A DNA stretch of 64,000 bases from sequence record OP617745.1; one strand, written 5' to 3'. Shown one piece after another: positions 54,407 to 62,656 of the stretch. Within the stretch, counting starts at the first letter, position 1. Every line of letters starts with the position of its first letter. The notes below the pieces were generated by a model. That model saw only the letters and a program-made list of their open reading frames with translations. It was not told where the DNA came from and made no database searches. A program made the position numbers and the translations under genes.

Positions 54407-56194
54407 ATGAGTATTAGTTTTAATCACCCCCAGAATACTATAACTAGTACTGGAAATTCTGGATCATTAAATCTAGTGGTTCTTGGTGGTTCTCCTACAA
54501 ACCCAAGACCAATACGTTTTAATTCTTCATCCGTTATTATGCCTGTGCAATCACTACCCACAGGTGAAGCTGGTGCTATTGTTTTTGACAAAAGCACAAA
54601 AACCATGAAATATCATGATGGCTCTAACTGGGTTGAATTATTAAGTGCTTCCGATGTTGTAGCACCTCTTAATGTTCAAATCAATAACATTATCAATTCA
54701 ATGGGAACAAAAATTGATACTGTTAATTATTCAAGTGCTGCAATACCGATGGCTAGTATTAGTGGTACTAATTTGAATATAGTATTTCCTAATTCCAATC
54801 CAACTGTTGGAAGCACTGGATTATATACCAGTGCAAAAACTGGCAGTATTATGTACTATAGTTTAGCGTCAGGCCAAACATATGCCAGTATTCGTGAACA
54901 AATGTCAGGAAAAACCAATGGTCAAAGTGGTAGAACCGGTTCTCAAACTTCTCCGTGGTTAACTTCAGATGGATGGTGTCTGGCTGATGGTATGTGGTGG
55001 ACGTGGCAAGGCGAGAATGGTACAGTACTAAAACAAACACCAAACCTGAATCAAAGTGCATATTTTAAGGGTTTATCTTCTGGTGGAATTACAAAAACTG
55101 ATTCACCAATTGGACAAAGTGGTTCTCTTGATACCTATACATTCACAATCCCAGATCATTATCACGGTGTAGGCCAAATGAATGGAAATTCTGGACCTAC
55201 TGGTGACGATGGTTCATTTATATTTGGAAGATCTTGGAATGATGGAAATTCATATAGAGGACTTACTATTACTGGAGATCTCAACCGACGTGAAGAACGT
55301 TCGATTAATGGGAGTGATCCAAATATTGCATTGAGTACAACGAATTCTATTTATTTAAATGCATCTCAACGTACAATTTCACACTCACATAACTTACAGA
55401 ACTTCGACGTAGCACACTTCAATGTTGCAGTACTGTATAATATTGCTGAACCAAGCTTGGCATTATCGGAAAGTGTGGCAAATACAAAATTCGTACTAAA
55501 ATCCGGTGATACTATGACTGGCAACTTGAATGTAGCCAACACTCTTAGAATCGCAGGTAATAGTACCAACATTCAGTTATATTTTACCAACTCTACTTTA
55601 TCTGAAAGAGCAGCAATTTATCACCAAAGTACAACAAATACATTAAGACTGCGTTCAAATGGTGGTTCTGAAGTATATATTAATGGTGATGGTTCTCTGT
55701 ATGTTCCAGGTTCCACAACCGTTACTGGCAATTTTGTATCACAAGGTTCCGCAACTGTTTCTGGTAACATTATATCACAGGGTTCTGCAACAGTTTCTGG
55801 TAACATTACATCACAAGGTTCTGCAACTGTCTCTGGTAACATTACATCACAAGGTAGAAATGTAGTAAGAGCTATTAATGGGATAACTGCTGATGGTAAT
55901 GGAAACTTAAATGTAACGAATTCTAGTGGTACTACTTCCGGCTGGCATAAAGATGAAGGTACCGGTATTATCACACAATGGGGTTACATCCAAAGTACTG
56001 GTAATGATATCCATGTAAACTTTCCACGAACTTTCAGTTCAGCATGTTACTGTGTAACATTGGGTCAAATTTTCAACTCTCATGCTGACCAAGGACGAAC
56101 TGCACGTTTATTAGCACCTGCGTCAGTTTCTGGATTTGATTTTTATATCGGTTCATCAGAAACTGGGTGTTACTGGCAAGCAATCGGTCGATAA
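54407..56194 (+). CDS. Tail fibre-like protein
   Basis: Collar-like GWCLADG..PNL, FVLKSGDTMTGNL, VRAINGITADGNGNL and C-terminal GIITQWG..FPRTFS..C..V..YWQAIG. Confidence 0.75.
   Translation: MSISFNHPQNTITSTGNSGSLNLVVLGGSPTNPRPIRFNSSSVIMPVQSLPTGEAGAIVFDKSTKTMKYHDGSNWVELLSASDVVAPLNVQINNIINSMGTKIDTVNYSSAAIPMASISGTNLNIVFPNSNPTVGSTGLYTSAKTGSIMYYSLASGQTYASIREQMSGKTNGQSGRTGSQTSPWLTSDGWCLADGMWWTWQGENGTVLKQTPNLNQSAYFKGLSSGGITKTDSPIGQSGSLDTYTFTIPDHYHGVGQMNGNSGPTGDDGSFIFGRSWNDGNSYRGLTITGDLNRREERSINGSDPNIALSTTNSIYLNASQRTISHSHNLQNFDVAHFNVAVLYNIAEPSLALSESVANTKFVLKSGDTMTGNLNVANTLRIAGNSTNIQLYFTNSTLSERAAIYHQSTTNTLRLRSNGGSEVYINGDGSLYVPGSTTVTGNFVSQGSATVSGNIISQGSATVSGNITSQGSATVSGNITSQGRNVVRAINGITADGNGNLNVTNSSGTTSGWHKDEGTGIITQWGYIQSTGNDIHVNFPRTFSSACYCVTLGQIFNSHADQGRTARLLAPASVSGFDFYIGSSETGCYWQAIGR
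55739..55855 (+). repeat. 36-bp coding tandem repeat, 3 copies plus a partial (SQGSATVSGNI[I/T])
   Basis: TCACA(A/G)GGTTC(C/T)GCAAC(T/A)GT(T/C)TCTGGTAACATTA(T/C)A repeated. Confidence 0.9.
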
Positions 56195-56231
56195 TTTTTT
56201 TTGAACGAAAATAACATATAACGATATAATT

Positions 56232-56262
56232 AAAGCATCTGACACACAGTCAGGTGCTTTTT
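56232..56262 (+). terminator. Probable terminator after the fibre gene
   Basis: AAAGCATCTGAC-acaca-GTCAGGTGCTTT then TT. Confidence 0.6.
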
Positions 56263-56292
56263 ATATAATAATGACAAAGAAGGAAATTAATT

Positions 56293-56586
56293 ATGGCTAA
56301 ACATGAAGACAAAGTACAAATTGAAGATCTAAATAATGAACAACGCAAACGTCTTAGTGACGGTCTGAACAATGCAGTAGTTCAACTTACTTTTATTGAT
56401 GATACCAAAGCCTCACTGAAAGATTTTATTGATTCACTGGCTGACGAACTCGGTATCGATGCGAGTGATATCAAACAAGCCGCTAATACTATCTATAAAC
56501 AAAACTTCTTCGATAAATCCAGTAAGCATGATAAAATCGAAACTATTCTAAGTATTACTGGTAATCTTCCACAAGCCGACGATTAA
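56293..56586 (+). CDS. Putative dsDNA-binding protein (T4 DsbA-like)
   Basis: 97 aa; LKDFIDSLADELGID..IKQAANTIYKQNF resembles T4 DsbA IKDI..RAKDELGVD..FNRLLALYHK. Confidence 0.55.
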   Translation: MAKHEDKVQIEDLNNEQRKRLSDGLNNAVVQLTFIDDTKASLKDFIDSLADELGIDASDIKQAANTIYKQNFFDKSSKHDKIETILSITGNLPQADD

Positions 56587-56598
56587 TACATTATAAAT

Positions 56599-56626
56599 AA
56601 AAGCCTCCTTTTCTGGAGGCTTTTTC
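56599..56626 (+). terminator. Intrinsic terminator
   Basis: AAAAGCCTCC-ttttct-GGAGGCTTTT. Confidence 0.75.
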
Positions 56627-56661
56627 TATCTGTTAAGTGCAATTAAAAATAAGGAAATTTA

Positions 56662-59190
56662 ATGTATATTGATGCATATATGGAACGAAAACGTAGTGGT
56701 GATGTGTTGCACGTAGTAGAACGAAAAAATGGAAAGCGTATTCTACGAGAATTACAACCACTATATGAGTATTATGTAGAAAATGTTAATGGTAATCACA
56801 AAACCATTTATGGTACTAAAGCAGAAAAACTGGAATTCGATACTGCATCTGAACTAAAACGAAGTATAGAAAAAAATGTAGCAAATGGAATCAGAACATT
56901 TGAAGGTAAATTCAATGTTGTATTCAAAACACTTGCTCAATATTATATGGGTACTGAATCACCAGATTTAAACATTGTATTCTTCGATATAGAAACTGAT
57001 TTTCATAAGAAATTTGGTTATGCATCTCCATCTAATCCCTTTAATCGTGTAACAGCCATTTCATTATATCAGTCATGGACAGGTAAAGATTATGTACTTA
57101 CCCTTGCTCCAGAAGATATGACAACAACAGAAGCACAGGATATTGTCAATAAACTAAATACGGAAACTAATGATCCAAATTCAAGTGTAATTCTTTATAC
57201 TGATGAAAAGGAAATGTTCATGGATTTCTTTAGTCTAATTGATGATAGTGATGTATTATCTGGATGGAATAGTGAATTTTTTGATATTCCTTACATGATT
57301 AACAGAACCAAAATTATCTTCAATGAAGCCATGACTGCTCGTTGGTGTTTATGGAATAAAAAACCAATTGCACGTGAAGCGGATAACTTTGGTAAATTGG
57401 TACAGACATATGATTTGGTTGGTCGAGTTCATCTTGATTATCTTGCTCTTTATAAGAAACACGCCGCTCAGGTAGAGCAATCGTATAAACTTGATTATAT
57501 CGCAGAAAAAATCACAAAAGAAAATAAAGTACAGTACGAAGGATCTCTGGATAAATTATATAGAGAAGATTATATGACTTTCCTTCGATATTCTAAACAG
57601 GATAGTATTCTTCTCAAAAAAATCGATTCTATTCTTGACTATATTAGTCTGCATAACCGACTGGCACATAAAGAATGTGTTCTCATCAAAACTACTATGG
57701 GTTCAGTAGCACTGATTGACACTTCAATTATCAATCTAGCACACAAACGTGGTGAAGTGGTATTTGATAAAAAAGAAGAGGTTGAAATTGATCCAGAACT
57801 TGAGTACTATGATGGATACGATGATGATGAAGACAATAATGATTCAAAACTCAGTGCAAAAGCAGCAGGTGCATGGGTACAAGACCCAATATTAGGATTA
57901 GTTGAATACTTGGGTTGTACTGACTTTAACTCACTTTACCCAACTGTACTTCGAACTCTAGGAATGAGTACTGAATGTATTCTTGGGCAAATTAGACAAG
58001 ATTATACAGAAAAATACTTAGAAGAACGTATATCTGAACAAAAAGCAAAGTCTAAATCAAAATCATTTGAACCGGAGTGGACAGCAGCATGGCATGGTTT
58101 ATTCGCCGCTGTGGAGTTTACGATGGTACATGAAAGAAGTGAAAAACTACTGACTATTGATTTAGAAGATGGCAGTTCTTTCCAGGCAACTGGTTCACAG
58201 TTATATGATATTATATTCAGTCCAGAAAGTACTATTGTACTTAGTGCAAATGGAACACTATTTGATAAATCAAAATATGGTGTTATTCCAGATATCCTAA
58301 CGCAATGGTATTCTGAGCGTAAAGCCCAGCAAAAAATGGTAATTGATTATAAACATATGGCTTCAGATGGTTGGGAAATTCCATCACCTGATATTGTTCA
58401 AAATATGTTTTCACAATTCAGTACTAAATCATACTATAAAACAAACCTTCATGAAGAAGATCCAGTATATCTTCTACGTAAAGCTATAGGTGATAATAAT
58501 CTTGAAGAAATTGCTCGTCTTATTGTAGAAAATAATTTAGTACTAAAAGATGGACGTATTTTTTGTTCAGATGAGGATAAAAAATATTTCAAACAACAAA
58601 GTGCCTTCTGGAAACAAAACCAGCAAATTCGTAAAATTCTTCTAAACAGTCTTTATGGTGCACTATTGAACAAAGGAAGTACTTTCTTTGATAAACGACT
58701 TGGACAATCAGTAACACTAACTGGTCGCTCAATGACAAAACACATGGCAAGTCGCATTAATGAAATTACTACTGGAGTGTATAATCACACTGGTGGTAGT
58801 GTTATATATGGTGATTCTGTAACTGGTGATTCTGTAATTGATGTAATCATTGATGGAAAACCACAGTCTATTCCCGTTGAAGAACTTTATGAAATGTTTA
58901 TTAGTACTGAATATAATGATAAGGGTGATAAAGATTATGTTAAACTTGAATTGTTGGTAAAAACATTTAGTAAATCAGATAATTGTGTTTATTATGATTC
59001 TGCAAAAACTATTATGCGTCATAAAAACAAAAATGATTTATATGAAATAAGTACTGAATACAATAAAATCAAAACTACATCAGACCATAGTATCATTGCT
59101 GAAGTTGATGGTGAAATTGGTGAATATACTCCATTGGAAATTGAAGAATTAATTGAAAATGATTGTGATGTATATATGATAATATCGTAA
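56662..59190 (+). CDS. DNA polymerase B (gp43-like), N-terminal part fused to split-intein N fragment
   Basis: ExoI FFDIETD, ExoII WNSEFFDIPY, region II DFNSLYP, region III KILLNSLYG, then YGD followed by intein start SVTGDS. Confidence 0.93.
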   Translation: MYIDAYMERKRSGDVLHVVERKNGKRILRELQPLYEYYVENVNGNHKTIYGTKAEKLEFDTASELKRSIEKNVANGIRTFEGKFNVVFKTLAQYYMGTESPDLNIVFFDIETDFHKKFGYASPSNPFNRVTAISLYQSWTGKDYVLTLAPEDMTTTEAQDIVNKLNTETNDPNSSVILYTDEKEMFMDFFSLIDDSDVLSGWNSEFFDIPYMINRTKIIFNEAMTARWCLWNKKPIAREADNFGKLVQTYDLVGRVHLDYLALYKKHAAQVEQSYKLDYIAEKITKENKVQYEGSLDKLYREDYMTFLRYSKQDSILLKKIDSILDYISLHNRLAHKECVLIKTTMGSVALIDTSIINLAHKRGEVVFDKKEEVEIDPELEYYDGYDDDEDNNDSKLSAKAAGAWVQDPILGLVEYLGCTDFNSLYPTVLRTLGMSTECILGQIRQDYTEKYLEERISEQKAKSKSKSFEPEWTAAWHGLFAAVEFTMVHERSEKLLTIDLEDGSSFQATGSQLYDIIFSPESTIVLSANGTLFDKSKYGVIPDILTQWYSERKAQQKMVIDYKHMASDGWEIPSPDIVQNMFSQFSTKSYYKTNLHEEDPVYLLRKAIGDNNLEEIARLIVENNLVLKDGRIFCSDEDKKYFKQQSAFWKQNQQIRKILLNSLYGALLNKGSTFFDKRLGQSVTLTGRSMTKHMASRINEITTGVYNHTGGSVIYGDSVTGDSVIDVIIDGKPQSIPVEELYEMFISTEYNDKGDKDYVKLELLVKTFSKSDNCVYYDSAKTIMRHKNKNDLYEISTEYNKIKTTSDHSIIAEVDGEIGEYTPLEIEELIENDCDVYMIIS
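58816..59190 (+). mobile_element. Split intein N fragment (124 aa)
   Basis: Block A SVTGDSVI directly after YGD; block B TTSDHS (TxxH); acidic tail, then stop. Confidence 0.88.
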
Positions 59191-59216
59191 AAATGTGATA
59201 TGGTGATGGATTAACA

Positions 59217-60230
59217 ATGGAATGTATCACCATACATAAAAGGATTATTAATATGGCTAAAAAAATCAATACATTTGATGAGTATTTGGAAAGTTTTAAG
59301 AAGTCATCAAAACTGAATAGAAATATTTTATCTGAATTAGAAATAGAACAACTTAAAGAACTTTATAACAAATTTAATATTGAAAAAGTTACATATCTTG
59401 GAAAATCACCAATAAGATATGCATATAATTTTATAAATTATAATGTCAATAGTAGTACTTGGATTTCTGACATTAAACGCATAATTGAACTTGGGAATAA
59501 AGCAAATAAAGAAAAAATGATTCTTATGTATGGAAGTGAACATGGTAATGAAAAATGGAATAATTATTTAAAAGTACAATCTGAATCAAATACATTTGAA
59601 TATAAAAATAAAAAATTTGGAATGACCAAAGAAGAATTTAAAGAATATAATTCCAGAAGATCTGTAACTCTTAAAAATCTTATAAAACGACATGGTGAAG
59701 AAATTGGTTTAGAAAAGTGGAATGAATATTGTGACAGACAACGATATACTACGTCACTTGATTATTTCATTGAAACATATGGTGAAATTAAAGGAACTGA
59801 AAAGTATGAATCGTATATTGAAGTTGTATCTAAAAATATAAAATACTGTTTCAAAAATAAAATTGTGTCAAATTTGGAAAATGAAGTACGTAATGAAATT
59901 GAAAAATATTTCAGTACTGAATCGCAATATATAATTGAAACTGATATGAAATGCTATTCATCTGCTTTTGATATCTATATACCATCAAAAGAACTTTTGA
60001 TAGAAGTACATGGTGATTATTGGCATATGAATCCAAAAACCCATAATCCTTCTTATATCAATCCTACAACAAAAATGTCAGCAAAACAAAAATGGCATTT
60101 GGATAAAGTTAAAGTTGGTTTTGCAAATAAAAATGGTTATGATGTTATTGTTATATGGGAATCAGATTGGAAGACTGACAAAGATAATATTATGGAGAAT
60201 ATTATAAAATATGAAAAAACAAGAAACTAA
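59217..60230 (+). CDS. Free-standing Vsr-like/PD-(D/E)xK homing endonuclease between the split-intein halves
   Basis: Three (Y/H)GxExGxEKW/Y repeats; FDIYIPSKELLIEVHGDYWH and GYDVIVIWESDW; start may be ATG 59253. Confidence 0.8.
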   Translation: MECITIHKRIINMAKKINTFDEYLESFKKSSKLNRNILSELEIEQLKELYNKFNIEKVTYLGKSPIRYAYNFINYNVNSSTWISDIKRIIELGNKANKEKMILMYGSEHGNEKWNNYLKVQSESNTFEYKNKKFGMTKEEFKEYNSRRSVTLKNLIKRHGEEIGLEKWNEYCDRQRYTTSLDYFIETYGEIKGTEKYESYIEVVSKNIKYCFKNKIVSNLENEVRNEIEKYFSTESQYIIETDMKCYSSAFDIYIPSKELLIEVHGDYWHMNPKTHNPSYINPTTKMSAKQKWHLDKVKVGFANKNGYDVIVIWESDWKTDKDNIMENIIKYEKTRN

Positions 60231-60576
60231 TATTATAAGTAATGAAGATTATCGTAAAGTTCAATCTATGGTTATGAATCAGTATAATAAATCAAACTTA
60301 CATCCTGATGTTCATTTGGAAAATAATCAATACAGAATTGATGGAATTTCGCATCTTAGTCAAGATGTTTTACTAAGATTGAAAACAAAAGTGTGTGTAG
60401 ATTTATTAAAAGAAATAATCAGTACTGAATGGAATTTAGATAAATCAAAAACTACGTATAAAAAAGAAAAAATTGTTAGTGTAAAAAATATTGGTAGTAC
60501 TGATGATTATGTATATGACATTAGTATGGGTGGTATTAATCATTATTTCTTTGCTAATAATATTTTAGTACATAAT
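60211..60576 (+). mobile_element. Split intein C fragment (122 aa, ends His-Asn)
   Basis: KIVSVKNIG..DYVYDISM..NHYFFANNILVHN|T. Confidence 0.88.
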
Positions 60577-61425
60577 ACCGATTCTGTGTACTTCAGCGTT
60601 GTTCATTATTTAAAAGAACAAAACATTCCATGTGATCTAAGTAAAGAAGAGATTGTGGATATGTATATAAAAATTGGTGATGAAGTGGGTGAGTCTTTTC
60701 CTGAATTTATGGACAAAATGTTCAATACTGGAATCGAAAAAGGTAAAATTGTAGGTGCTGATCTGGAAATGGTTGGCTCCCGAGGTCTGTTCCTTAAAAA
60801 GAAACGTTATGCTATACTGAAATATTGGGAAGATGGGTTCCGTAAAGATGTTGATGGTAAACCTGGTGAAATCAAAGCAATGGGGCTTGAGATTAAGCGT
60901 TCAGATACACCAAAATACATCCAGAACTTCCTTGAAGAGACTTTAATGGCATTACTGGTAGGGGAGTCCGAGAGTGAATTAAAACAGCGTGTACGTGATT
61001 TTAAGGCGGTATTTAAGGACAAACCAGCACACGAAAAGGGTTCGCCTAGAACAGTGAAAAATTATTCAAACCTTGAAGCTGATTTTAAAAATACTGGTAA
61101 ATGTCATGTAGGTCACGTCCTCGCTGGTATTCAATGGAATATGTTACGCAATGCATATGATGATAAAACTGTGCCAGAAGTTACTGATGGTACTAAAGTG
61201 ATTGTATGTGATTTGAAACCAAATCCACTTGGAATTACTAAAATTGGTTATCCAATTGATTGTGCTGAGTACTTACCTGAGTGGTTTCTTGAATTACCGT
61301 TCGATACAGATAAAATGGAAGAAATTATCTTAACTAAAAAACTGGATAATATCTTTGGTATTCTTGATATGGATATTGGTATTCATGAAAAAAGTACTGC
61401 ACAGGATTTTGGATTTTTCTCGTAA
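60211..61425 (+). CDS. Split-intein C fragment fused to DNA polymerase B C-terminal part
   Basis: Block F VYDISM and block G FFANNILVHN, then extein TDSVYF; PolB motifs KKRYA and KAMGLEIKRSDTP. Confidence 0.93.
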   Translation: MKKQETNIISNEDYRKVQSMVMNQYNKSNLHPDVHLENNQYRIDGISHLSQDVLLRLKTKVCVDLLKEIISTEWNLDKSKTTYKKEKIVSVKNIGSTDDYVYDISMGGINHYFFANNILVHNTDSVYFSVVHYLKEQNIPCDLSKEEIVDMYIKIGDEVGESFPEFMDKMFNTGIEKGKIVGADLEMVGSRGLFLKKKRYAILKYWEDGFRKDVDGKPGEIKAMGLEIKRSDTPKYIQNFLEETLMALLVGESESELKQRVRDFKAVFKDKPAHEKGSPRTVKNYSNLEADFKNTGKCHVGHVLAGIQWNMLRNAYDDKTVPEVTDGTKVIVCDLKPNPLGITKIGYPIDCAEYLPEWFLELPFDTDKMEEIILTKKLDNIFGILDMDIGIHEKSTAQDFGFFS

Positions 61426-61437
61426 TGATGGTGATAT

Positions 61438-61800
61438 ATGTTTGAAGATGAAATTCAAAGGAATAATGAATTGTATGAAGAGTATAAAAAAATGAAATCT
61501 GAAACAAAACAAAAGAACATTAACATAAGAATTACAGAATGTCTAATGAGTAATACTATCGATTCAGTACTGGCATATGATGCAATAGATGAGGACATTC
61601 TAACCAAGAATGGTTTCGTTAGAACAGGAACTATTTCTTTGTGTAATGAGATTGTTGGTGTTTATAGAAACCCAGTAAATAAAAAAACTTTTACTATAGA
61701 AATTGGTGATGATGTAGAACATCCATCAAATTTCATTGAAAAGGTTAACAATGAAATAATTAAAAAATCAGATAAACACTATCTGTACAACTGGAAATAA
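61438..61800 (+). CDS. Hypothetical protein
   Basis: 120-aa ORF. Confidence 0.55.
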   Translation: MFEDEIQRNNELYEEYKKMKSETKQKNINIRITECLMSNTIDSVLAYDAIDEDILTKNGFVRTGTISLCNEIVGVYRNPVNKKTFTIEIGDDVEHPSNFIEKVNNEIIKKSDKHYLYNWK

Positions 61801-61912
61801 TTATTTTTTTATTAAAAAATCTGAACAAGACAAGCATTTGTGATAAAATGCTTGTGTTGGAAAAGCAAAGAAACAACGATTAAATTTATAAAATAACAAA
61901 GAGGAATTAAAT

Positions 61913-62656
61913 ATGGATCTACGCAGTGTACTACGCGATCTGATGAACACTACTTCTAGTATGAATTTTGATAAAATTTCCATTACTAAAGAAGATCGTG
62001 GCGATGGTGAAAAAATTTATATGGAAAGTAAAGCAGATCAAAATGCTATTGTAATGCGTGCGTATGTAAAAGAGTCCGTACCTGAACTGGTTGAACTAAG
62101 TGGTCGTTTTGGTCTAGGTCAACTAGGTTTACTACAAGGTCTTCTGAATCTTAATACATTTAAGACTGAAGACACAAAAATTGTACCAATTATCAAAGAT
62201 GGTGCTGTTAAAAGTTTAACCTTTACATCACCAGAAGCAACAACAAATTTTGTTGTTATTTCTGATAAACTAACACCACAGGCTGTTAAAGTTGCTGAGC
62301 GTGGTTATGAAATTCAAGTAACACCAAGTGCTTCTAAAATTCAGGAACTCAAAAGCTTTAGTTCTCTGTTCAAATCAATGAGTACTAAAATTACTCCTTA
62401 CACCGAAAATGGGACTCTATATTTCTCTTGTGGTGAGAAAAATAAAAATACTTCAGGTGGTGTACTTGCATTCTGTCTGTGTGATGTTGAATACCCAATG
62501 CTACAAGGCTATGAAATTGATTCAGTACTATCAGCTACTGCTCGTGTAGCAAACGCAGAAAGTACTGAAATGTTTATTACAAATAAAGGTCTAATGAAAA
62601 TTAAAGTTGATACCGGAATTGCAGTATACGAATTTTTCATGCAAGGTTCAGTATAA
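61913..62656 (+). CDS. Putative sliding clamp / polymerase accessory protein (gp45-like)
   Basis: 247 aa (clamp-sized), near polB, strong GAGG RBS and high-expression codon usage; family call is inference. Confidence 0.5.
   Translation: MDLRSVLRDLMNTTSSMNFDKISITKEDRGDGEKIYMESKADQNAIVMRAYVKESVPELVELSGRFGLGQLGLLQGLLNLNTFKTEDTKIVPIIKDGAVKSLTFTSPEATTNFVVISDKLTPQAVKVAERGYEIQVTPSASKIQELKSFSSLFKSMSTKITPYTENGTLYFSCGEKNKNTSGGVLAFCLCDVEYPMLQGYEIDSVLSATARVANAESTEMFITNKGLMKIKVDTGIAVYEFFMQGSV

Follow-up and report, generated by a model that had tools for sequence, protein, structure and literature searches.

Results

A split polymerase gene in phage KP13-7

The stretch of 64,000 nucleotides analysed here (the window) is part of record OP617745.1, the 357.7-kb genome of the Klebsiella phage KP13-7 (Alcyoneusvirus; 100% megablast match for positions 56000-62000), and it carries a gene for a family-B DNA polymerase (PolB) that is broken in two. 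The N gene encodes the polymerase up to the YGD of motif C, followed by the N-terminal half of an intein (IntN). The C gene encodes the C-terminal half (IntC), followed by TDS and the remainder of the polymerase. The broken motif C carries the catalytic aspartates of family-B polymerases. A third gene, for a Vsr-like endonuclease, lies between the two (Table 1). The original prediction for this DNA was that polB is split in motif C by a Ser1/Thr+1 split intein. We found support for this core reading in genomes where the site is empty, in matches to known inteins and in invariant catalytic residues.

Table 1. Features of the split polB locus in the window, and what lies between the N and C genes in related loci (aa, amino acids; nt, nucleotides; ORF, open reading frame)
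Feature	Position	Strand	Remarks
N gene (N-extein and IntN)	56662-59190	+	842-aa ORF
N-extein of family-B DNA polymerase	56662-58815	+	718 codons; exonuclease domain, and polymerase domain up to YGD of motif C
Presumed co-conversion tract	58776-60693	+	bounded by private substitutions 58776, 58779, 60678, 60693
Inserted cassette (IntN, spacer with hairpin, endonuclease gene, IntC region)	58816-60576	+	1761 bp, 587 codons
IntN	58816-59190	+	124 aa and stop codon; Ser1, NX Arg68-His69, block B Thr88..His91, acidic tail
RNA hairpin	59194-59238	+	-17.5 kcal/mol, z -3.7, 0/200 shuffles as stable
Endonuclease ORF	59217/59253-60230	+	337/325 aa; frame other than that of the polB halves
Free-standing putative homing endonuclease gene	59253-60230	+	325 aa; Vsr-like (EDxHD-type); alternative ATG 59217 inside hairpin
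Vsr-like nuclease domain	59910-60227	+	about residues 220-325 of the endonuclease
C gene (IntC region and C-extein)	60211-61425	+	404 aa; same frame as N gene
IntC N-terminal extension	60211-60459	+	residues 1-83; conserved; first 20 nt overlap end of endonuclease gene
Canonical IntC	60460-60576	+	residues 84-122; block F Asp103, His111; block G His121-Asn122
C-extein of PolB	60577-61425	+	282 codons and stop; first residue Thr+1 of TDS
Between N and C genes: KP13-7/phiKp_21, L008			endonuclease gene
Between N and C genes: L005, L006, L009, L010, L011			no endonuclease gene; spacing -1 to 92 nt
Between N and C genes: L007 and L012			N gene then tail-fibre-like gene (L007); C gene on other contig (L012)

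One other record, phage phiKp_21 (LC768491.1, Japan), matched positions 56000-62000 of KP13-7 at 99.6% in megablast. Eight further records (RaK2 and K64-1 with two accessions each, Muenster, RCIP0023, OU509535 and W12-3) matched only 71% of this query, in two pieces. The empty site was established in RaK2, K64-1, Muenster, RCIP0023 and W12-3, and OU509535 shows the same two-piece match pattern. Both carrier records name K. pneumoniae as host, one phage having come from Israel and the other from Japanese sewage, and both label the three genes of the split locus 'hypothetical protein'. RaK2, K64-1 and Muenster have one 3003-nt gene annotated 'DNA polymerase' at the same place.

At the DNA level, the comparison with RaK2 places the cassette directly between the GAT and ACC codons of YGD/TDS. 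When the flanks were aligned apart (blastn), the left one stopped at L004:6313 and the right one began at L004:6314, and the insert itself had no blastn match in the RaK2 locus. The N-extein matches the Pfam families DNA_pol_B_exo1 and DNA_pol_B and is identical to residues 1-718 of RaK2 PolB at 716 of 718 positions (BLASTP), the two substitutions arising from 2 non-synonymous changes among 15 nt differences. Residues 123-404 of the C gene correspond to RaK2 PolB 719-1000 with 100% amino acid identity, and the 7 nt differences in this part are all synonymous. Hence, 22 nt differences from RaK2 in the exteins result in only 2 amino acid changes. The alignment bears out the composition predicted for the N gene, i.e., 718 residues of polymerase ending in YGD and a Ser-initiated IntN of 124 residues (SVTGDS, TTSDH). 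It also answers the proposed comparison with polB of related jumbo phages: the gene is contiguous and encodes 1000 residues in RaK2 and the other empty-site genomes. For the C gene, the junction of VHN with TDS and 282 residues of polymerase was read correctly, but the canonical IntC makes up only about 39 of the 122 residues that precede it.

The split arrangement in KP13-7 is real, and not an artefact of assembly or a frameshift. There is no single contiguous frame through 59190-60211: the polymerase frame contains 21 stops across the insert, which excludes a single sequencing error as the cause, and the independent isolate phiKp_21 has the same three genes, its insert differing from that of KP13-7 at one of 1761 nt. 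We rejected a single frameshift or read-through event joining the halves on account of the same 21 stops. A group I intron or other RNA element in the insert was also rejected, since an Rfam scan of positions 56000-62000 by E-value gave nothing there; its only results were two sub-threshold Phe_leader matches on a terminator hairpin at 56599-56624. The insert has a GC content of 25.2%, against 34.2% in the exteins.

The intein halves

IntN scored 27.0 bits with the NCBIfam model TIGR01445 (intein_Nterm; cut-off 24.5) and matched Pfam Intein_splicing with an E-value of 8e-6, under the gathering score (PF14890 scores of 26.1 and 18.9 bits; gathering score 35.8). Its matches among inteins of the PDB (7oec, 5bkh, 9hth and 2lcj, E 1e-4 to 8e-4) include archaeal polymerase inteins and a 173-residue intein chain named 'DNA-directed DNA polymerase'. 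In the scan with curated models, IntC matched none of those for the C-terminal splicing region. Residues 87-121 of the canonical IntC matched the PolB16 intein 8cpn (E 1.5e-5), and the canonical part is 57% identical to the IntC of phage MIJ3 and 50% to that of phage Aes123. Its structure was predicted with low confidence when modelled alone (predicted local distance difference test, pLDDT, about 50), as expected for half a domain.

We compared the intein with those of eight relatives, which are only 52-76% identical. Ser1, which directly follows the YGD of the N-extein at a boundary set by the empty-site alignment, is invariant, as are Thr88 and His91 of the block B motif Thr-x-x-His (TTSDH). 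His69 of the NX motif (R68-H69) is invariant as well, and the residue before it is Arg or Lys in each of five aligned relatives; a histidine so preceded is a reported signature of Ser1 (oxyester) inteins (PMC10189870). In the canonical IntC, V101-I104, N110, H111, H121 and N122 do not vary, among them the block F residues D103 and H111 and the block G residues H121 and N122. Thr+1 of TDS is the residue that follows YGD in RaK2; it is present in all eight relatives by construction, the HN-TDS junction having served as the boundary anchor. IntN has 32 invariant positions overall, and the ratios of non-synonymous to synonymous substitution rates (dN/dS) relative to the closest relative, L005, are 0.12 for IntN and 0.11 for the canonical IntC. 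The catalytic nucleophiles are Ser1 and Thr+1, and three non-catalytic cysteines are present in the split intein pair.

The break lies between motifs N4 and C2, the stretch where endonucleases usually insert, but with 83 extra residues ahead of C2. IntN of KP13-7 has a net charge of -15 and IntC of about 0, the corresponding values in the eight relatives being -8 to -19 for IntN and -3 to +2 for each IntC part. Of the charge pairing suggested in the original prediction, the strongly acidic IntN is therefore found, but IntC is neutral or slightly acidic, and not basic, in all eight relatives.

The endonuclease gene and its hairpin

The endonuclease belongs to a family of more than 100 homologous protein clusters, for some of which the source gives the name G:T-mismatch or Vsr endonuclease. 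Across 43 aligned homologues the catalytic residues D240, E251 and H258 never vary, and a fourth, D284, is almost invariant, as are W302 and E303. The profile placed these residues in the active-site region of Escherichia coli Vsr, at an E-value of 0.055. The AlphaFold2 (AF2) model of the protein (pLDDT 91) was matched by Foldseek, with probability 1.00, to 1vsr, 1cw0 and chain 3r3p_B of the EDxHD endonuclease I-Bth0305I (PMC3239194), whose fold it shares; the target-normalised template modelling (TM) scores were 0.60, 0.57 and 0.72. These matches have weak E-values (0.01-0.06), as they cover just a third of the model. This fold match confirms the separate Vsr-like reading frame noticed between the halves. 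The N-terminal 215 residues form an all-helical repeat region, in the alignment and in the AF2 model, which presumably binds DNA. We found no NUMOD match in the KP13-7 protein, and PF07460 in some distant homologues. A sequence-only search of the PDB with the endonuclease gave chance matches only. The protein is 30% identical to the 'putative VSR endonuclease' of Aes123 (E 3e-33) and 28% identical to the 'VSR endonuclease' of phage PTm1 (E 1e-22). Among named phages its closest homologues, at 36-42% identity, were in the Lak megaphages of Prevotella (MK250015-MK250029; e.g., MK250024.1:514648-515361), whose genomes are unannotated.

The RNA hairpin stands just ahead of the AAGGA ribosome-binding site for the start at 59253 and encloses the ATG at 59217. 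The metagenomic locus L008 has a hairpin at the corresponding place (-17.6 kcal/mol, z -4.4), and shares with KP13-7 a 20-nt overlap between the endonuclease and C genes.

Signs of recent transfer of the cassette

We compared the extein DNA, its pieces taken apart, of the two carriers and of five empty-site Alcyoneusvirus genomes. There are about 60 variable extein sites. Only four of the 3003 nt are private to both carriers, all synonymous, two of them upstream of the junction (by 40 and 37 nt) and two downstream (by 102 and 117 nt); the probability that all four fall within 120 nt of it by chance is about 4e-5. Elsewhere in polB the carriers are not each other's closest relatives and group with different empty-site genomes. 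The carriers differ at 21 of 3003 nt in the exteins, giving 4 amino acid changes, and at 1 of 1761 nt in the insert (Fisher p = 7e-4), which is thus about tenfold more conserved than its flanks. The endonuclease reading frame is intact, with one amino acid difference between the carriers.

Judged by its GC content (0.25 against 0.34), the insert is of foreign origin. Together with the private flanking sites and the near identity of the insert, the low GC content fits recent copying of the cassette into different polB backgrounds, as would result from recent endonuclease-driven homing with short co-converted flanks. The donor is not in the databases, where the nearest IntN is 76% identical. No sequence near the empty site matched the consensus of the pseudo-palindromic target of I-Bth0305I. 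Among local pseudo-palindromes the best one (10/14 at -41) includes both upstream private sites and is not significant.

A separate patch occurs in phiKp_21 (locus L017), where five private substitutions lie within 34 nt, 177-210 nt downstream of the junction (window 60753-60786). They are absent from the other six genomes and look like a recombination patch from an unsampled allele.

Related split-PolB loci from metagenomes

Searches of metagenome proteins returned four N-halves, whose IntN are 56-76% identical to that of KP13-7, and eleven C-halves. The eight related split-PolB loci are all in RaK2-like neighbourhoods, with DsbA-like, Cpn10, zinc-ribbon and RNase H-like genes. L008 is the sole metagenomic relative with an endonuclease gene between the halves, 49% identical to that of KP13-7. 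To judge from these loci, the endonuclease gene is gained and lost, in line with the gene-breaking model of Dassa et al. The split intein itself looks old in the wider clade, since its divergence there is similar to that of the exteins.

Two of the contigs, with the regions L007:5001-8402 and L012:1-1936, come from the same sample (SRR31860671) and do not overlap. The gene that follows the N gene in L007 is 59% identical to the N-terminus of the tail-fibre-like gene of the window (54407-56194), and the matching C gene is at the start of the L012 contig, after an unrelated partial reading frame. Perhaps the tail-fibre gene stands between the halves; alternatively, the two contigs may belong to different phages. 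L012 also encodes an 893-residue large terminase that runs off the locus and has a LAGLIDADG_3 match (L012:7626-7936), i.e., contains an intein; a Hint and LAGLIDADG intein was reported in the terminases of RaK2 and K64-1 (PMC5259590). Genes of the T5orf172/MUG113 family (about 100 residues, GIY-YIG-like and often mobile) are found upstream of the tail-fibre gene in some relatives (L005:376-702, L006:2205-2507, L008:1995-2300), and none is at the corresponding place of the window.

Comparison with known systems

The same PolB architecture is already present in phages Aes123, PTm1, MIJ3 and CP21, and its kind is thus not new. The prediction of a candidate new Ser1/Thr+1 split intein therefore holds for the allele, which differs from those of Aes123, MIJ3 and PTm1 (27-34% identity in IntN), but not for the kind. 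In the literature on RaK2-like phages we found no mention of a PolB intein, only of terminase inteins. The N-extein of Aes123, MIJ3 and PTm1 ends in DTD and the C-extein starts with Ser (DTD/S, Ser+1), whereas in KP13-7 and its relatives the insertion is two codons upstream, after YGD, with Thr+1. Archaeal polymerases, too, have inteins in motif C.

In the Aeromonas phage Aes123 (JN377899), gp43B1 with an N-intein, the putative VSR endonuclease and gp43B2 with a C-intein are annotated in the same order as the genes of KP13-7. The two phages share the split of PolB in motif C, a Ser1 class-1 split intein and an endonuclease gene overlapping the C gene. IntN is of similar length in both (120 residues in Aes123, 124 in KP13-7), with an identity of only 31%. 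IntC differs in length (39 and 122 residues), and PolB of Aes123 is further split upstream into gp43A. The engineered cysteine-less CL/CLm inteins were derived from the Aes123 intein (PMC12707363, PMC11923092). The Tenacibaculum jumbo phages PTm1 and PTm5 have the same three-gene order, already annotated as 'intein-containing split DNA polymerase precursor', 'VSR endonuclease' and 'DNA polymerase'. The IntN of PTm1 is the closest among cultured phages (34% identity), whereas its IntC (43 residues) and endonuclease (261 residues) differ in length.

In the Pseudomonas jumbo phages MIJ3 and PA5oct, Ser1 intein halves interrupt PolB at motif C, with an endonuclease gene between them; the locus was described in 2019 with a putative split intein and an 'HNH' endonuclease (PMC6892783). 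Part of the MIJ3 endonuclease is 34% identical to the nuclease domain of KP13-7 (E 3e-7), but the protein has 560 residues. The MIJ3 IntC region of 85 residues bears no resemblance to the extension in KP13-7, and the annotated C gene starts with an unrelated leader of 48 residues. Campylobacter phage CP21 has the same PolB architecture, and its split intein was tested in 2025 with two metagenomic PolB split inteins (PMC12707363). The IntC of characterised PolB split inteins has 39-46 residues (PMC12707363). Naturally split family-B polymerase inteins with Ser1 are also known from Nanoarchaeum equitans and PolB16 OarG (PMC10189870). PolB16 has the histidine of the NX motif and a similar IntC, but its split is atypical (15 and 168 residues) and its site is GDTD/S. 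In N. equitans the halves are unlinked and there is no endonuclease gene.

Fractured genes were defined by Dassa et al. in 2009 in ocean metagenomes, with gp41-1, NrdJ-1, IMPDH-1, DnaE and others (PMC2677866). Like the KP13-7 locus, they consist of a gene with IntN, an endonuclease gene of GIY-YIG or Vsr-like type that has a hairpin on its 5' side, and a gene with IntC, and both the hairpins of the free-standing endonuclease genes and overlapping frames have been described (PMC2677866). KP13-7 has all these traits: a host gene in two reading frames on one strand, intein halves, a free-standing endonuclease gene, a hairpin and overlapping frames. PolB is absent from the host genes listed by Dassa et al. 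(gp41, IMPDH, DnaE, NrdA, NrdJ, ligase and terminase; PMC2677866). Their inteins use Cys and have a short, basic IntC, whereas KP13-7 has Ser1 and a long, non-basic IntC; nor were those genes tied to cultured phages with intein-less sister genomes.

A proposed mechanism and its alternatives

We regard it as very likely that polB of KP13-7 is a fractured gene, interrupted by a mobile class-1 Ser1/Thr+1 split-intein cassette with a Vsr-like homing endonuclease; the mobility, the endonuclease activity and the trans-splicing are inferred. The polypeptides N-extein-IntN and extension-IntC-C-extein would associate through their intein halves. Ser1 and Thr+1 would then carry out oxyester trans-splicing with cyclisation of Asn122, giving a polymerase of 1000 residues with an intact motif C. 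During co-infection the endonuclease would cut intein-less polB alleles near the insertion point, and repair would copy the whole cassette and about 40-120 nt of the sequence beside it. Translation of the endonuclease would be limited by the hairpin that precedes its gene. The main argument that the halves still splice is that the residues of the chemistry are under selection, beyond those of binding. A second comes from the position of the break inside the catalytic motif C, where 246 intein residues would remain in an unspliced complex. Trans-splicing has been shown in experiments for related PolB split inteins (Aes123-derived, PolB16 and LCGC14; PMC12707363, PMC10189870, PMC11923092).

Several observations weigh against this interpretation. 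In IntN, the nearest inteins with experimental tests reach an identity of only about 30%. With an IntC that is not basic, the electrostatic 'capture' known from other split inteins may not work here in the same manner. The extension of IntC is without a precedent of known function and could interfere with assembly, or regulate it. Finally, five of the eight related split-PolB loci lack an endonuclease gene, so that mobility is not a constant trait of this intein.

The alternative that fares best, although we consider it unlikely, is that the cassette is a fixed, immobile relic of vertical descent, with precise loss in the empty-site genomes and an endonuclease gene that is decaying or domesticated. 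Most related split-PolB loci have indeed lost this gene or never had it, and the similar divergence of inteins and exteins in the wider clade is what long vertical descent would produce. Yet the insert is present in just two of the seven Alcyoneusvirus polB genes compared base by base, the carriers agree far better in it than in its flanks, and the sites private to them hug the junction. Its GC content 9 points under that of the gene and an intact endonuclease frame with its catalytic residues kept also disagree with a relic.

A polymerase that works unspliced as two chains, the intein halves being a non-covalent docking module only, is somewhat less probable still. Two-chain enzymes of this sort exist in phages, namely a two-subunit PolB and an NrdA (Aeh1) split by endonuclease genes (PMC2677866, PMC3045599). 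In some T4-like Aeromonas phages gp43 is split without an intein (work of Petrov, Karam and co-workers, cited in PMC2677866): two genes encode PolB and the insertion can hold a homing endonuclease gene, but intein halves are absent, the enzyme has two chains and the break is elsewhere. Docking alone does not account for the invariance, in diverged relatives, of Ser1, the NX His, the block B Thr and His, the block F Asp and His and the terminal His-Asn, and the intein residues left within YGD/TDS make activity of such a complex unlikely.

Inactivation of polB in the carriers, with another polymerase replicating the genome, is very improbable given the strong purifying selection on the exteins, the completeness of both halves to the last residue and the persistence of the split architecture in at least eight diverged phage lineages. 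The chance of an assembly or sequencing artefact is negligible, since the same 1761-bp insert occurs in independent isolates from different countries, homologous arrangements occur in independent metagenome assemblies, the polymerase frame is repeatedly stopped, and the middle gene is a coherent one whose fold is predicted with confidence.

The extension of IntC

The 83 residues that precede the canonical IntC are conserved over their whole length in the 13 relatives aligned, with 19 invariant positions in the eight relatives and a dN/dS of 0.28 relative to L005. The predicted fold is a helix, a beta-hairpin and a helix, with AF2 pLDDT above 90 for residues 11-70. The extension matched no family of Pfam or PHROGs, and no fold in the PDB or BFVD. 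Its sequence relatives, in a phmmer search of 1.84 billion representatives, were found only in C-halves of PolB; one other match, P0112, was rejected as spurious, being a low-complexity repeat protein. We also considered a degenerate HNH remnant, which no evidence supports. Since the extension precedes Thr+1, it would leave with the intein.

On the evidence of its conservation, the extension is a selected part of the split-intein system. We tentatively propose, as possible rather than probable, that split inteins have here a new accessory domain, which at least 13 split-PolB lineages conserve. If it holds, the extension might replace the missing electrostatic pairing in capturing the very acidic IntN, or might alternatively time splicing or the expression of the endonuclease. 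The split intein would then have an architecture with two long halves (124 and 122 residues), neither of the 'typical' nor of the 'atypical' class, and KP13-7 and RaK2 would be a natural pair of occupied and empty sites for intein homing among cultured jumbo phages.

Neighbourhood of polB

The gene just downstream of polB (61438-61800) is called with 120 residues in KP13-7, phiKp_21, Muenster and RCIP0023. The RaK2 record (L002:5175-5447) gives it 90 residues, probably a difference in the annotation of the start codon. Upstream, between a 97-residue reading frame and polB, there is a perfect 10-bp GC-rich stem (56599-56624) flanked by runs of T and A, resembling a bidirectional terminator. Further upstream, the tail-fibre-like gene encodes tandem near-identical peptide repeats of the SQGSATVSGNI type (55621-55974), and its comparison with RaK2 (blastn) showed internal repeats of 75 nt with 83-84% identity.

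Implications

Split inteins of this family are sought as tools for protein ligation, and few efficient members are known (PMC12707363). KP13-7 adds a putative Ser1/Thr+1 pair without catalytic Cys, from an easily grown Klebsiella phage. For annotation, three genes labelled as hypothetical in KP13-7 and phiKp_21 are the two halves of the replicative polymerase and a putative homing endonuclease. The Alcyoneusvirus genomes offer a clean natural comparison, being more than 99% identical, with or without the cassette, and with a short private tract flanking the occupied alleles. With the metagenomic relatives that lack the endonuclease gene, the carriers display several stages of the proposed cycle of fractured genes within one phage clade.

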